A DNA stretch of 64,000 bases from Pseudomonas aeruginosa PAO1 (GCF_000006765.1 NC_002516.2); one strand, 5' to 3'; numbered from the stretch's first letter, positions 21,471-38,590 are shown. Notes: generated by a model not told the origin, from the sequence alone. Numbers and translations: made by a program.

Positions 21471-21506
21471 TCATTAACATGTTAAATATAACGTTAACAC
21501 ATTAAC
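21471..21506. promoter_or_regulatory. Two TTAA-N4-TTAA operator-like sites (HpaR/MarR type)
   Basis: TCATTAACATGTTAA (21471-21485; perfect 12-bp palindrome core) and AACGTTAACACATTAAC (21490-21506) in the hpaA/hpaG gap. Confidence 0.75.
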
Positions 21507-21566
21507 GAGTTTTCGCCAGGACGGCCCCCTCGCCGTTCGCTTATCGCGCCAGGAGACACCACCACA

Positions 21567-22226
21567 ATGAGCCGCGCACTGAATGACGTCGCCGCCGGCA
21601 CCCTGTTCGGCGTCGCGCTGAACTACAAGGGCCTGCTCGACAGCCGCCTGCCGGAGTTCCAGCAGCCGCCCTACCAGAAGCCGCCAGTGAAGCCGGTGTT
21701 GTTCATCAAGACACCGAATACCCGCAACGAGCACGACGCCCCGGTGCTCTTCCCGCGCGGCGTCGAGCGCCTGCAACCGGGCCCGGCGCTGGGCGTGGTG
21801 ATCGCTCGCGACGCAAGCCGGGTGAAGGAGGAAGAGGCCATGGCGCATGTCGCCGGCTACGTGATCGTCAACGAGTTCAGCCTGCCGGAAGACAGCTACT
21901 ACCGCCCGGCGGTGAAAGCCAAGTGCCGCGACGGCTTCTGCCCGCTCGGTCCACAACTGGTGCCGGTGCAAGAGATCGTCGATCCCCATGCGCTGGAGCT
22001 GAAGCTGTACGTCAACGGCGAACTGCGCCAGCGCAACAACACCGCCAACCTGGTGCGCGACATCCCGCGGCTGATCGCCGAGATCAGCGAGTTCATGACC
22101 CTGCACGCCGGCGACGTGCTGATCACCGGCACCCCCGAAGGGCGCGTCGATGTGCATCCCGGCGACCGCGTCGAGGTCGAGATCGACGGCCTCGGCCGCC
22201 TCGCCAACAGCATCGTCGCGGAATGA
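21567..22226 (+). CDS. hpaG: FAH-family isomerase/decarboxylase, N-terminal subunit
   Basis: GVALNY, KAKCRDGFCPLGP, MTLHAGDVLITGTP. Confidence 0.92.
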   Translation: MSRALNDVAAGTLFGVALNYKGLLDSRLPEFQQPPYQKPPVKPVLFIKTPNTRNEHDAPVLFPRGVERLQPGPALGVVIARDASRVKEEEAMAHVAGYVIVNEFSLPEDSYYRPAVKAKCRDGFCPLGPQLVPVQEIVDPHALELKLYVNGELRQRNNTANLVRDIPRLIAEISEFMTLHAGDVLITGTPEGRVDVHPGDRVEVEIDGLGRLANSIVAE

Positions 22227-22236
22227 GGAACCGACC

Positions 22237-23016
22237 ATGAAACACGCACGCATCCGCTACCAGGGCCGGGTTCACCAGGTCACCGTGGAAGACGCCAACG
22301 CCGTCCGCCTGGCCGACGGCACCCTGCTCGCCGAGGACCGGGTGGAGTGGCTGCCGCCGGCCACCGGGAGCATGTTCGCCCTCGGCCTGAACTACGCCGA
22401 CCATGCCGCCGAACTGTCGTTCAAGGCGCCCAGCGAACCGCTGGCGTTCCTCAAGTCGCCGGGCACCTACACCGGCCACCGCCAGGTCAGCTGGCGTCCG
22501 GACAACGTCGACTACATGCACTACGAGTGCGAACTGGTGGCGGTGATCGGCAAGCCGGCGCGCAACGTCCGCCGCGAGGACGCCCTCGGCTACCTGGCCG
22601 GCTACACGGTGTGCAACGACTACGCGATCCGCGACTACCTGGAGAACTACTACCGGCCCAACCTGCGGGTGAAGAACCGCGACGCCACCACCCCGGTGGG
22701 GCCGTGGATCGTCGACGCGGCCGAGGTTCCCGAGCCGAACCGGCTGACCCTGCGCACCTGGGTCAACGGCGAGCTGCGCCAGGAAGGCAGCACCGCGGAC
22801 ATGATCTTCGACATTCCCTACCTGATCGAATACTTCTCCAGCTTCATGACCCTGCAGCCGGGCGACATGATCGCCACCGGCACCCCGGAAGGCCTGTCCG
22901 ACGTGGTCCCCGGCGACGAAGTGGTGGTGGAGGTGGAGGGCGTCGGTCGCCTGGTCAACCGAATCGTCAGCGAGGCCGAATTCTTCCGCGCCCGCGCACA
23001 GGAGCACGCAGAATGA
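22237..23016 (+). CDS. hpaG: FAH-family isomerase/decarboxylase, C-terminal subunit
   Basis: 259 aa from ATG 22237; LGLNYADH, HYECEL, YYRPNLRVKNRD. Confidence 0.92.
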   Translation: MKHARIRYQGRVHQVTVEDANAVRLADGTLLAEDRVEWLPPATGSMFALGLNYADHAAELSFKAPSEPLAFLKSPGTYTGHRQVSWRPDNVDYMHYECELVAVIGKPARNVRREDALGYLAGYTVCNDYAIRDYLENYYRPNLRVKNRDATTPVGPWIVDAAEVPEPNRLTLRTWVNGELRQEGSTADMIFDIPYLIEYFSSFMTLQPGDMIATGTPEGLSDVVPGDEVVVEVEGVGRLVNRIVSEAEFFRARAQEHAE

Positions 23017-36580: not shown

Positions 36581-37003
36581 TCAGGGCTTTATCTTCTTCA
36601 GCTCGTTGAGCAGTTCCAGCAACTGCGCGAGCTTTTCCTCGCCGAACCGCTCCTGGATGCGCTGGTAGTTCTTCTCCATGTCGCCGCTCATGGAGACGAA
36701 GCACTGCTGGCCCTTTTCCGTCAGGTTCACGTAGACCCGCCGCTGGTCCTTGGGCGCCTTCCAGCGCCGGACGATGCCGTCGCGCTCCAGGCGCGCCAGC
36801 ACGCCGGTCATGCTCGGGCGCAGGATGCAGGCCTGGTTGGCCAACTGGTAGCTCTCCATCTCGCCCTGCTGGCGCAGGATGCGGATCACCCGCCACTGCT
36901 GCTCGGTGAGACCGTGCTGGTTGAGGGAGGGGCGGAAGAAACTCATCGCGGCTTCGCGAGCCTGCAACAGGGTCAGGGTCAGGGAGGGTCTTGGCGTTGA
37001 CAT
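36581..37003 (-). CDS. hpaR: MarR-family homoprotocatechuate repressor HpaR
   Basis: 140 aa; SLTLTLLQAREAAMSFFRP, LTEQQWRVIR, ILRPSMTGVLARLE, DQRR. Confidence 0.92.
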   Translation of the reverse strand: MSTPRPSLTLTLLQAREAAMSFFRPSLNQHGLTEQQWRVIRILRQQGEMESYQLANQACILRPSMTGVLARLERDGIVRRWKAPKDQRRVYVNLTEKGQQCFVSMSGDMEKNYQRIQERFGEEKLAQLLELLNELKKIKP

Positions 37004-37088
37004 AGGGTCCGAGCTTGGATGACTGGTTTCGAAAGTGCAGAAGAGTAGCGGAAAAAACACAGGCTGCATGCGGGTATGCAGAAGGAAA

Positions 37089-38297
37089 TCAACGGTTTCC
37101 GCCGTGCAGGGCCAAGCCCAGCGCGAGCAGGCTGCCGACGCCGCAGACGGCCATCACCAGCGCCATCGGCAGCACGCCGGGCAGCGCCAGCCAGCCGACC
37201 GCCAGGCTGGCCAGGCAGCCGAGGCCGAACTGCCCGGACACCGCCACCGCCGAAGCCGCCCCGGCCTGTCCGGGATACAACGCCAGCAGGCTGGCGATGC
37301 AGTTGGCGCCGAGCAGGCCGGTGACGCTGACGAAGCACAGCAGCCCGGGCACCAGCGCCCACAACCCGCCCCGCTCGCCGAGCGCCGCATAGCCGAGGAG
37401 GAACAGCCCGGACACGCAGGCCAGCAGGCTGCCGGCCCGCAGCAGCGGCCGCGGACCGTGGCGGCGCACCAGGCGCGCGCTGCACCAGGTGGCGAGCATC
37501 ACGCCGAGGATGTTCAGGCCGAAGAACCAGCCGAAGCGCTCCGCGCGCACGCCGAAATGCTCGATGAACACGAAGGGCGCGGCGCTGATGTAGGCGAACA
37601 TCCCGGCGAACGCCAGCCCCATGCACAGCACGTAGCCCAGCGCGCGACGGTCGCCGAGCAGCCGCCCATAGGCGAGAAAGGCCTGGGCCAGGCTGCCGCC
37701 GCGGCGCTCCGGCGGGTGGCTTTCGGCGACCCGCCAGACCGCCAGCAGGCAGAGCCCGGCGAACAGCGCCAGGACCACGAACAACGCGCGCCAGCCGGCC
37801 CAGAGCATCAGGTAGCCGCCGAGCAGCGGCGCGGCCAGCGGTGCCAGCATGGTCACCATGTGCATCAATGCCAGCATCCGGGCGGCCTCGCCCAACGGAT
37901 AGAGGTCGCGCACCATGGCCCGCGCCAGCACCGACGCGGCGCCGCCGCCGAGGGCCTGGAGCACCCTCAGCAGGACCAGTTGCCCCGCGCTGTCGGCCAG
38001 CGCGCAGGCCAGGCTGCTGAACAGGTACAAGGCGATACCGGCCAGCAGCACCGGGCGCCGGCCGAAACGGTCGGACAAGGGGCCGTAGAACAGCATGCCG
38101 ACGCAGAAGCCGACCAGGAAGCCGCTGATGCTCCGCTGCACCTGGGCATCGCTGGCGCCGAGATCGGCGGCGATCGCCGGCAGGCTCGGCAGGTACATGT
38201 CGATCGACAGCGGGCCGAACGCCACCAGCGCCGACAACAGCAGCAACAGGCGTCGTTCGCCGCTTCCGACCTGAATCCTCGATGCACTCGCAGGCAC
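37089..38297 (-). CDS. Bcr/CflA-family MFS efflux transporter
   Basis: 402 aa from GTG 38297 with GGAG RBS; SIDMYLPSLP, GPLSDRFGRRP. Confidence 0.92.
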   Translation of the reverse strand: MPASASRIQVGSGERRLLLLLSALVAFGPLSIDMYLPSLPAIAADLGASDAQVQRSISGFLVGFCVGMLFYGPLSDRFGRRPVLLAGIALYLFSSLACALADSAGQLVLLRVLQALGGGAASVLARAMVRDLYPLGEAARMLALMHMVTMLAPLAAPLLGGYLMLWAGWRALFVVLALFAGLCLLAVWRVAESHPPERRGGSLAQAFLAYGRLLGDRRALGYVLCMGLAFAGMFAYISAAPFVFIEHFGVRAERFGWFFGLNILGVMLATWCSARLVRRHGPRPLLRAGSLLACVSGLFLLGYAALGERGGLWALVPGLLCFVSVTGLLGANCIASLLALYPGQAGAASAVAVSGQFGLGCLASLAVGWLALPGVLPMALVMAVCGVGSLLALGLALHGGNR

Positions 38298-38437
38298 GCT
38301 CGCCCTCCTCTTCTTCGCCTTTCGGTCCAGACGACACCGCCGTGCACGCGGATGCAAGTTCGCCGTCCGGGAAATCCTCGCGCCGCGACCTCGTTCACCC
38401 TGGCAGCGCGCGGGCCTGGCTCCTTTCGCGGGCCGAC

Positions 38438-38590
38438 AACGTTAACAGATTAACCAAATGCGCAGAAGGCGAAAGATTCCAGGCTGGCTTCGCTCTCCAG
38501 CGCCTTACCGTCAATGCTCGATGAGCATGGAAAGGGGCAGAGGCTAGCGAAGCTTCCGGGAGGATCGCCAACACTTCATTAACAAGTTAA
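38438..38590. promoter_or_regulatory. Two TTAA-N4-TTAA sites matching the hpaG operator pair
   Basis: AACGTTAACAGATTAAC (38438-38454) and TCATTAACAAGTTAA (38576-38590); each is one mismatch from a site at 21471-21506. Confidence 0.72.

Follow-up and report, generated by a model that had tools for sequence, protein, structure and literature searches.

Does the repressor HpaR of Pseudomonas aeruginosa PAO1 act only on the operon for meta-cleavage of homoprotocatechuate, or does it also reach transport genes? The question is raised by a 64,000-nucleotide stretch of this genome (GCF_000006765.1 NC_002516.2), referred to here as the window, which carries hpaR, the divergent hpaA and hpaG1 genes and, some 17 kb from the hpaG promoter, a gene for a major facilitator superfamily (MFS) transporter that diverges from the outer-membrane channel gene opdL. 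The original prediction held that one and the same operator pair occurs at both promoter regions. We found four TTAA-N4-TTAA boxes of a single family, two in each region, and boxes of this family recur before OccK porin genes and Bcr/CflA transporter genes in varied arrangements across Pseudomonas. On these grounds all four sites are likely to be HpaR operators, and opdL and the MFS gene likely members of the HpaR regulon.

Four boxes in two intergenic regions

Binding of HpaR to TTAA-N4-TTAA repeats, on which the original prediction relied, is documented by DNase footprints on the Yersinia hpaG1 promoter, which revealed two 15-bp sites of this form, "similar to E. coli W", one of them overlapping the -10 element (PMC7180172). 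In the window the motif occurs four times, always between genes, against 0.028 copies expected from base composition (G+C about 0.68). Two copies lie in the hpaA/hpaG1 promoter region and two in the divergent MFS/opdL intergenic region (Table 1). A check of the sequence recovered each of the four strings that had been quoted, at its place and with a one-base difference within each pair. All four boxes share the core TTAAC-A-NN-TTAA, which has no further copy on either strand of the window and for which dinucleotide-preserving shuffles averaged 0.00 matches; with one mismatch to TTAACNNNTTAA permitted, the same four sites alone were returned, against 0.37 expected. The four-box pattern is non-random.

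The boxes were also scored with a 22-nt position weight matrix. It was trained on 59 distinct boxes that precede hpaG1 in 79 other Pseudomonas loci, and the near-identical locus of P. paraeruginosa was left out. On this matrix the four boxes reached 27.6-35.2 bits, whereas the fifth-best position in the window scored 1.7 bits. Judged by the catabolic promoters of other species, the boxes of the MFS/opdL region are thus as good as those at hpaG. Each of the four fits the arrangement of TTAA arms with a 4-bp gap in the extended form (G/A)TTAA(C/T).

The idea of a shared operator pair stood only in part. The four sites belong to one family, but their layouts differ, with a centre-to-centre spacing of 20 bp at hpaG (21479.5 and 21499.5) and of 137 bp at MFS/opdL. 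The flanks that had suggested a pairing (TCA... and AACG...) are ordinary variants of the family consensus on the matrix. Because the flank identity within each pair falls inside consensus variation, it provides no separate evidence for a duplicated operator pair, and a duplicated origin was dropped.

At hpaG, box A1 lies within the -35/-10 spacer of a putative promoter and B1 just past its -10 element, over the expected start and 61 nt before the hpaG1 ATG, from which we infer a classical repressor layout. A strict scan rejects this promoter since its -10 hexamer ends in C, and strict consensus scans gave no promoter or terminator in either intergenic region. In the other region, 71 nt separate the end of A2 from the opdL ATG, and 144 nt separate the start of B2 from the GTG of the MFS gene.

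Table 1. Positions of the candidate operators and of the genes and signals around them, counted from the first nucleotide of the window
Feature	Position	Strand	Description
hpaA	20436-21347	-	AraC-type regulator of 4-hydroxyphenylacetate (4-HPA) catabolism, divergent from hpaG1; TIGR02297 485 bits (cutoff 275)
Putative hpaG promoter	21464-21492	+	TTGACG (21464), 17-nt spacer, TATAAC (21487); 10/12 consensus matches in a loose scan
Candidate operator A1	21471-21485		TCATTAACATGTTAA; core TTAACATGTTAA at 21474-21485, a perfect 12-bp palindrome; 35.2 bits on the matrix
Candidate operator B1	21490-21506		AACGTTAACACATTAAC; core TTAACACATTAA at 21494-21505 (CGTTAA-N4-TTAACG); 31.0 bits on the matrix
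hpa-meta operon	21567-28968	+	hpaG1, hpaG2, hpaE, hpaD, hpaF, hpaX-like permease, hpaH, hpaI
Unrelated block of ~7.6 kb	29050-36565		Separates hpaI from hpaR; Pfam and NCBIfam matches
Terminator-like hairpin, strong	36554-36574	-	Directly after hpaR; 9-pair stem with 7 G-C pairs
hpaR	36581-37003	-	140 aa, MarR-family repressor; 100% identical to PDB 2FBI (PA4135)
Two weak hairpins with T-runs	37064-37104	-	3' end of the MFS gene (stop codon 37089-37091) and MFS-hpaR spacer
MFS transporter, Bcr/CflA (DHA1)	37089-38297	-	402 aa, GTG start; NF008314 337 bits (cutoff 303)
Candidate operator B2	38438-38454		AACGTTAACAGATTAAC; core TTAACAGATTAA at 38442-38453; 27.6 bits on the matrix
Candidate operator A2	38576-38590		TCATTAACAAGTTAA; core TTAACAAGTTAA at 38579-38590; 31.3 bits on the matrix
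opdL (OccK4)	38662-39918	+	OprD-family outer-membrane channel; Pfam OprD PF03573 505 bits

The repressor, the transporters and their boxes across Pseudomonas

The MarR-family gene encodes a genuine HpaR, as had been assumed. Its product passes the TIGR02337 equivalog cutoff (203.4 against 121.2 bits) over the full 130-position profile, and its identity to the solved 2FBI gives it the MarR winged-helix fold; public annotation already labels relatives of PA4135 as HpaR. Its nearest matches among other solved structures are Acinetobacter baumannii HpaR (7EL2/7EL3), with 158 bits, and NadR of Neisseria meningitidis (5AIP), with 135 bits. The 7EL3 entry is the A. baumannii HpaR-DNA complex, crystallised on pseudo-palindromic DNA (PMC12541388), and in our alignment the recognition-helix segment is nearly identical among the three proteins.

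NadR (PDB 5AIP/5AIQ), about 54% identical to PA4135 (PMC4841544), also informs the ligand pocket. Its DNA binding is attenuated by 4-HPA, whose carboxylate is held by Ser9, Trp39, Arg43 and Tyr115, with Met22, Phe25 and Leu29 around the ring. These residues align, in that order, with S7, W37, R41, Y113, M20, F23 and L27 of the window HpaR, so that the carboxylate contacts are kept; the pocket changes are Asp36 to Glu, His7 to Arg and Asn11 to Thr. An effector of the hydroxyphenylacetate type is therefore a well-founded inference for the window protein. NadR differs in that it controls an adhesin gene in a host-adapted bacterium described in that account as devoid of an hpa pathway, and its operators are given as 22-bp sites.

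Family assignments of the two transport genes also agreed with those first made. The MFS protein passes the cutoffs of NF008314 and TIGR00710 (312 against 201 bits for the latter), which places it in the Bcr/CflA family, and its length equals that of the public P. aeruginosa protein P0241. It carries MFS motif A; a pattern search did not find the canonical antiporter motif C (G-x3-G-P-x2-G-G), a result that was not used as evidence. The porin is OpdL/OccK4, with 889 bits to PDB 2Y0H and 3T0S over its full length (residues 28-418).

To place the boxes in a wider context, we compared 80 Pseudomonas loci encoding a relative of the window HpaR, annotated with the window proteins, and counted boxes scoring at least 20 bits on the hpaG1-box matrix. 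Upstream of hpaG1, at least two boxes within 200 bp were present in 59 of the 64 genes and one box in 4, and paired boxes stood 20-21 bp apart almost everywhere. OccK-type porin genes in or beside an hpa cluster had at least one box within 400 bp upstream in 15/17 cases, and for Bcr/CflA MFS genes of at least 50% identity a box preceded the gene, or the operon joining it to a tripartite ATP-independent periplasmic (TRAP) transporter, in all 11 cases. The best relatives of the window MFS protein outside P. aeruginosa (59-64% identity) include members of such hpa-linked operons.

The arrangements in which these boxes occur are diverse. In eight loci (L002, L003, L006, L019, L024, L025, L027 and L028) a TRAP dctPQM-MFS operon and a porin gene are transcribed divergently, each side having one box, and the two boxes lie 166-186 bp apart; the L019 sequence ends before an MFS gene could appear. 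L018 lacks a porin gene but has the boxes and the TRAP and MFS genes; in L021 the MFS gene stands alone, about 50 nt downstream of a box; and in L022 hpaR is followed by a box and then by the MFS gene. In the fluorescens group the porin gene diverges from hpaR with a single box between them, and these porins are only marginally closest to OccK4. Such variety argues for selection on the regulatory link rather than inheritance of one layout.

Orthologues of opdL were located by protein search followed by inspection of their contigs, and only those of at least 67% identity were relied on. The P. panipatensis orthologue (77%) lies between an aldehyde dehydrogenase gene and flagellar export genes, with neither hpaR nor an MFS gene nearby; a box 71 nt before its ATG has a 22-mer almost equal to that of A2, and a second box stands 185 bp further upstream. 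On a P. citronellolis-like contig the orthologue (75%) is divergent from the genes of a TRAP transporter; one box lies 81 nt ahead of this porin gene and a second precedes dctP, and again neither hpaR nor an MFS gene adjoins the orthologue. In P. jinjuensis an 81% orthologue directly follows hpaI, and on a metagenomic contig a 67% orthologue comes after a TRAP system, near a feaR-like gene, an aldehyde dehydrogenase gene, a MarR gene, hpaA and hpaG. Boxes were present upstream of the opdL orthologues of L001, L081 and L083, the first of these being P. paraeruginosa, where the box again lies 71 nt upstream. Comparison of the MFS/opdL spacer of the window (38271-38661) with that of P. paraeruginosa (L001:8314-8736) showed nearly identical opdL-proximal 120 bp, including A2, and a diverged mid-spacer with insertions and deletions in which a B2-type box is nevertheless kept. 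The boxes are 137 bp apart in the one and 166 bp in the other, and the P. paraeruginosa B-type box (AACGTTAACAGGTTAACGAA) is the better palindrome.

Boxes were also seen before a further class of gene. A nearly invariant 32-bit box (TATAGATAACATGTTAACTATT) stands directly before a FeaR-type AraC gene in L029 (position 6381), L045 (position 4466) and about 20 other loci of the putida and fluorescens groups, which suggests that the tyramine/arylacetaldehyde branch also comes under control of the HpaR type. A second Bcr/CflA MFS gene, more distantly related (37-39% identity), comes after feaR in L029, L036, L037, L046 and L050.

Two porins of 62% identity (L084:3741 and L085:5650) were not counted as orthologues because they sit in VanAB-like clusters, with a VanA/VanB-like Rieske oxygenase, a reductase and a GerE-type regulator. 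Each carries one strong TTAA-N4-TTAA box (34.0 and 30.4 bits, respectively). These clusters may belong to the regulon as well, in which case a demethylase that feeds homoprotocatechuate is a speculative possibility, or a different regulator may use the same motif.

Weighing the regulatory and transport roles

The model that best accommodates these findings is as follows. Without ligand, HpaR dimers would occupy the four boxes. At hpaG, two boxes 20 bp apart over the -35/-10 spacer and the start region would keep the homoprotocatechuate meta-cleavage operon off, and in the MFS/opdL region each promoter would have one box, A2 for opdL and B2 for the MFS gene. Once 4-HPA or a pathway intermediate is bound in the conserved pocket, HpaR would leave the DNA, and the catabolic operon, the OpdL channel and the Bcr/CflA transporter would then be co-expressed, hpaR along with them only if transcription reads through from the MFS gene. 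OpdL would carry hydroxyphenylacetates across the outer membrane, a role towards which the evidence leans slightly. Tight repression by HpaR would thus explain why OpdL has been described as "cryptic", being poorly expressed under all conditions examined (PMC8346889). For the MFS protein we tentatively favor a relief-valve exporter of hydroxyphenylacetates or of reactive catechol or quinone products, because it co-occurs with importers (HpaX in the window, TRAP systems elsewhere) and its family is annotated as efflux; this remains a possible role rather than the expected one. Many hpa clusters with a TRAP-MFS operon lack hpaX in the meta operon (for example, L006, L018, L024, L025, L027 and L028), and TRAP and HpaX may be alternative inner-membrane uptake routes.

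Several observations weigh against this model. Within the 80 loci, two of the adjacent porin genes, in L039 and L042, lack their own box. Porins that adjoin TRAP-MFS operons in other species score nearer OccK6 than OccK4, for which reason they were rejected as OpdL orthologues, so part of the porin evidence comes from paralogues within the same OccK clade. Strict and loose scans gave no convincing sigma-70 promoter for opdL or the MFS gene. The strong boxes beside GerE-type regulators indicate that the motif may serve regulators besides HpaR, or that the regulon may be wider. In a porin-free background, OpdL preferred pyruvate (PMC8346889). Finally, a 2026 preprint reports that ParR binds the opdL promoter, with strong gel shifts.

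Of the alternatives, the one that survives best accepts that HpaR controls opdL and the MFS gene and disputes what they transport. The substrate of OpdL could be an upstream precursor or a small carboxylate, such as products of the tyramine/dopamine route, homovanillate, phenylacetate or pyruvate, instead of 4-HPA or homoprotocatechuate, and the MFS protein could be an importer. Placement of opdL orthologues beside a FeaR-like AraC regulator, an aldehyde dehydrogenase and an amino-acid permease fits this alternative, as do the feaR boxes of about 20 loci, the boxes of the 62% identity porins with VanAB-like oxygenases and the pyruvate preference; the below-cutoff matches of the MFS protein include the importer families PunC and FslD. 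Against it stand the orthologue that directly follows hpaI in P. jinjuensis and the agreement of the window HpaR pocket with the 4-HPA pocket. Moreover, carboxylates are the substrates of Occ channels, and of the channels tested in vesicle assays OccK4 performed best with phenylacetate, albeit with very low activity (PMC3260308). We regard a different substrate as a serious but unlikely alternative.

It could also be argued that the MFS/opdL boxes serve only the autoregulation of hpaR through an MFS-hpaR transcript, with opdL an unregulated neighbour and the distal box aiding repression as in Yersinia, whose boxes lie at -189 and -8. E. coli hpaR is cited as autoregulated, and the second hpaR paralogue found in many other pseudomonads has a box about 25 nt before its start. 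However, the P. panipatensis and P. citronellolis-like orthologues of opdL keep a box at a similar distance with neither hpaR nor an MFS gene adjoining, and the P. paraeruginosa orthologue keeps its box as well, which makes autoregulation alone improbable. The spacings of the divergent-region boxes (137, 166, 175-178 and 186 bp) also show no helical phasing conserved across species. The weak hairpins with T-runs between the MFS gene and hpaR further weaken a single-transcript model. For the same reason, the MFS-hpaR unit of the original prediction is uncertain: co-transcription, and hence autoregulation of hpaR, is no more than possible. Control of opdL and the MFS gene draws support from the recurrence of boxes before OccK porin and Bcr/CflA genes. 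A box-free promoter of hpaR's own may sit in the 85-bp MFS-hpaR gap.

A different protein might instead be the main ligand of the MFS/opdL palindromes, either ParR or a GerE/LuxR-type regulator, or the palindromes might be AT-rich promoter elements that resemble HpaR boxes. ParR-type response regulators usually bind direct repeats, which speaks against the first of these. The strong ParR gel shifts and the GerE regulators adjoining similar boxes count in favor of this explanation, but the hpaG1-trained matrix puts the MFS/opdL boxes level with those of hpaG and at least about 26 bits above the rest of the 64 kb, and the boxes co-occur with hpaR in many arrangements. We consider it slightly less probable still than autoregulation alone. 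Chance similarity, or a non-functional remnant of an old rearrangement, has the small number of sites in its favor and is highly improbable given four sites against 0.03 expected, all intergenic, and the persistence of B2 in P. paraeruginosa despite its diverged surroundings.

Control of both opdL and the MFS gene by HpaR thus remains the reading we prefer. The broader proposal that the Pseudomonas HpaR regulon is a complete, transport-inclusive switch of the "dihydroxyphenylacetate catabolon" is more doubtful, and we consider it rather unlikely in that full form.

Genomic setting and relation to known systems

The hpa-meta operon was assigned from the NCBIfam models HpaG-N, HpaG-C and HpaX and from gene order and 73-92% identity to orthologues in 60+ loci. 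The block that separates it from hpaR encodes DUF934, a nitrite/sulfite reductase, a FixG-like ferredoxin, a GntR-aminotransferase regulator, an extra cbb3 oxidase subunit I (ccoN) and a small open reading frame. It is missing at this place in most other species, where hpaR abuts the hpa cluster; in P. paraeruginosa the order hpaR-ccoN-hpaI and its spacing are as in the window. Every hpa gene is single-copy in the window, and neither a second hpaR nor hpaBC was found there. Many pseudomonads have two hpaR paralogues, of which the window protein resembles the one adjacent to hpaA. The remaining gene content also fits P. aeruginosa: a class C beta-lactamase gene is adjoined by that of a LysR-family regulator, a dehydrogenase E1 component is accompanied by a sigma-54 activator, and there are genes for a phytochrome kinase and an APH-family phosphotransferase.

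Orphan hpaR genes were encountered in seven loci (L008, L010, L011, L012, L016, L017 and L020, at about 10001-10420). Their products are 79-81% identical to the window HpaR, and no hpa genes and no boxes were found within 20 kb. In P. donghuensis the neighbours encode MOSC, peptidase C26 and ABC transporter proteins. P. aeruginosa is thus not the only species in which an hpaR gene stands apart from its targets.

Work in E. coli, Yersinia, A. baumannii and P. putida U has already established the HpaR repressor, operators of this type and control over the meta operon. What we describe extends the regulon of this known repressor and its operators and does not amount to a system of a new kind. The systems of E. 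coli W and Yersinia pseudotuberculosis (PMC7180172; Galan et al. 2003, as cited) combine a MarR repressor with TTAA-N4-TTAA sites, two to a promoter region with one on the core promoter, and with release by aromatic acids of the pathway. The window matches them in its repressor and sites and, by prediction, in the core-promoter overlap at hpaG and in the release. Unlike in these enterobacterial systems, hpaR of the window lies 7.6 kb from the operon, and there are additional operator-like boxes before an outer-membrane channel and a Bcr/CflA transporter, targets not described in the papers searched. P. putida U, where HpaR has the paralogue HpaY (Arcos et al. 2010, as cited in PMC7180172), shares with the window the genus, the hpa gene set and, by prediction for the window, repression of the meta operon. 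It differs from the window with its single hpaR, and the texts searched contain no mention of boxes at porin, TRAP, MFS or feaR genes.

Among outer-membrane channels, OpdL resembles the Occ channels encoded beside catabolic genes (OpdK for vanillate, the BenF-like channel and OpdH for cis-aconitate) in belonging to the OprD family and in being linked to carboxylate catabolism. In contrast to those, opdL of the window lies away from the pathway genes, and its link to them consists of the shared operators and of synteny elsewhere. Full-text searches returned no literature linking HpaR to opdL, PA4136 or PA4137, although curated regulon databases may already list some of these targets. Relative to the papers searched, what would be new is the extension of the Pseudomonas operator set to an outer-membrane channel, a Bcr/CflA transporter, TRAP systems and feaR.

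The structure of OpdL/OccK4 is solved, but the channel has been without a convincing substrate or inducer, and very little of it is made in laboratory media or infection models. If opdL is placed under HpaR, a checkable prediction follows of when the channel is made and what it carries. The Bcr/CflA transporter is likewise predicted to respond to an aromatic acid abundant at host surfaces, which would matter for efflux and for the permeability of the outer membrane in an important pathogen. Since HpaR boxes are found at transport genes and at feaR in many pseudomonads, the usual textbook description, in which HpaR represses one operon, would be too narrow for Pseudomonas.

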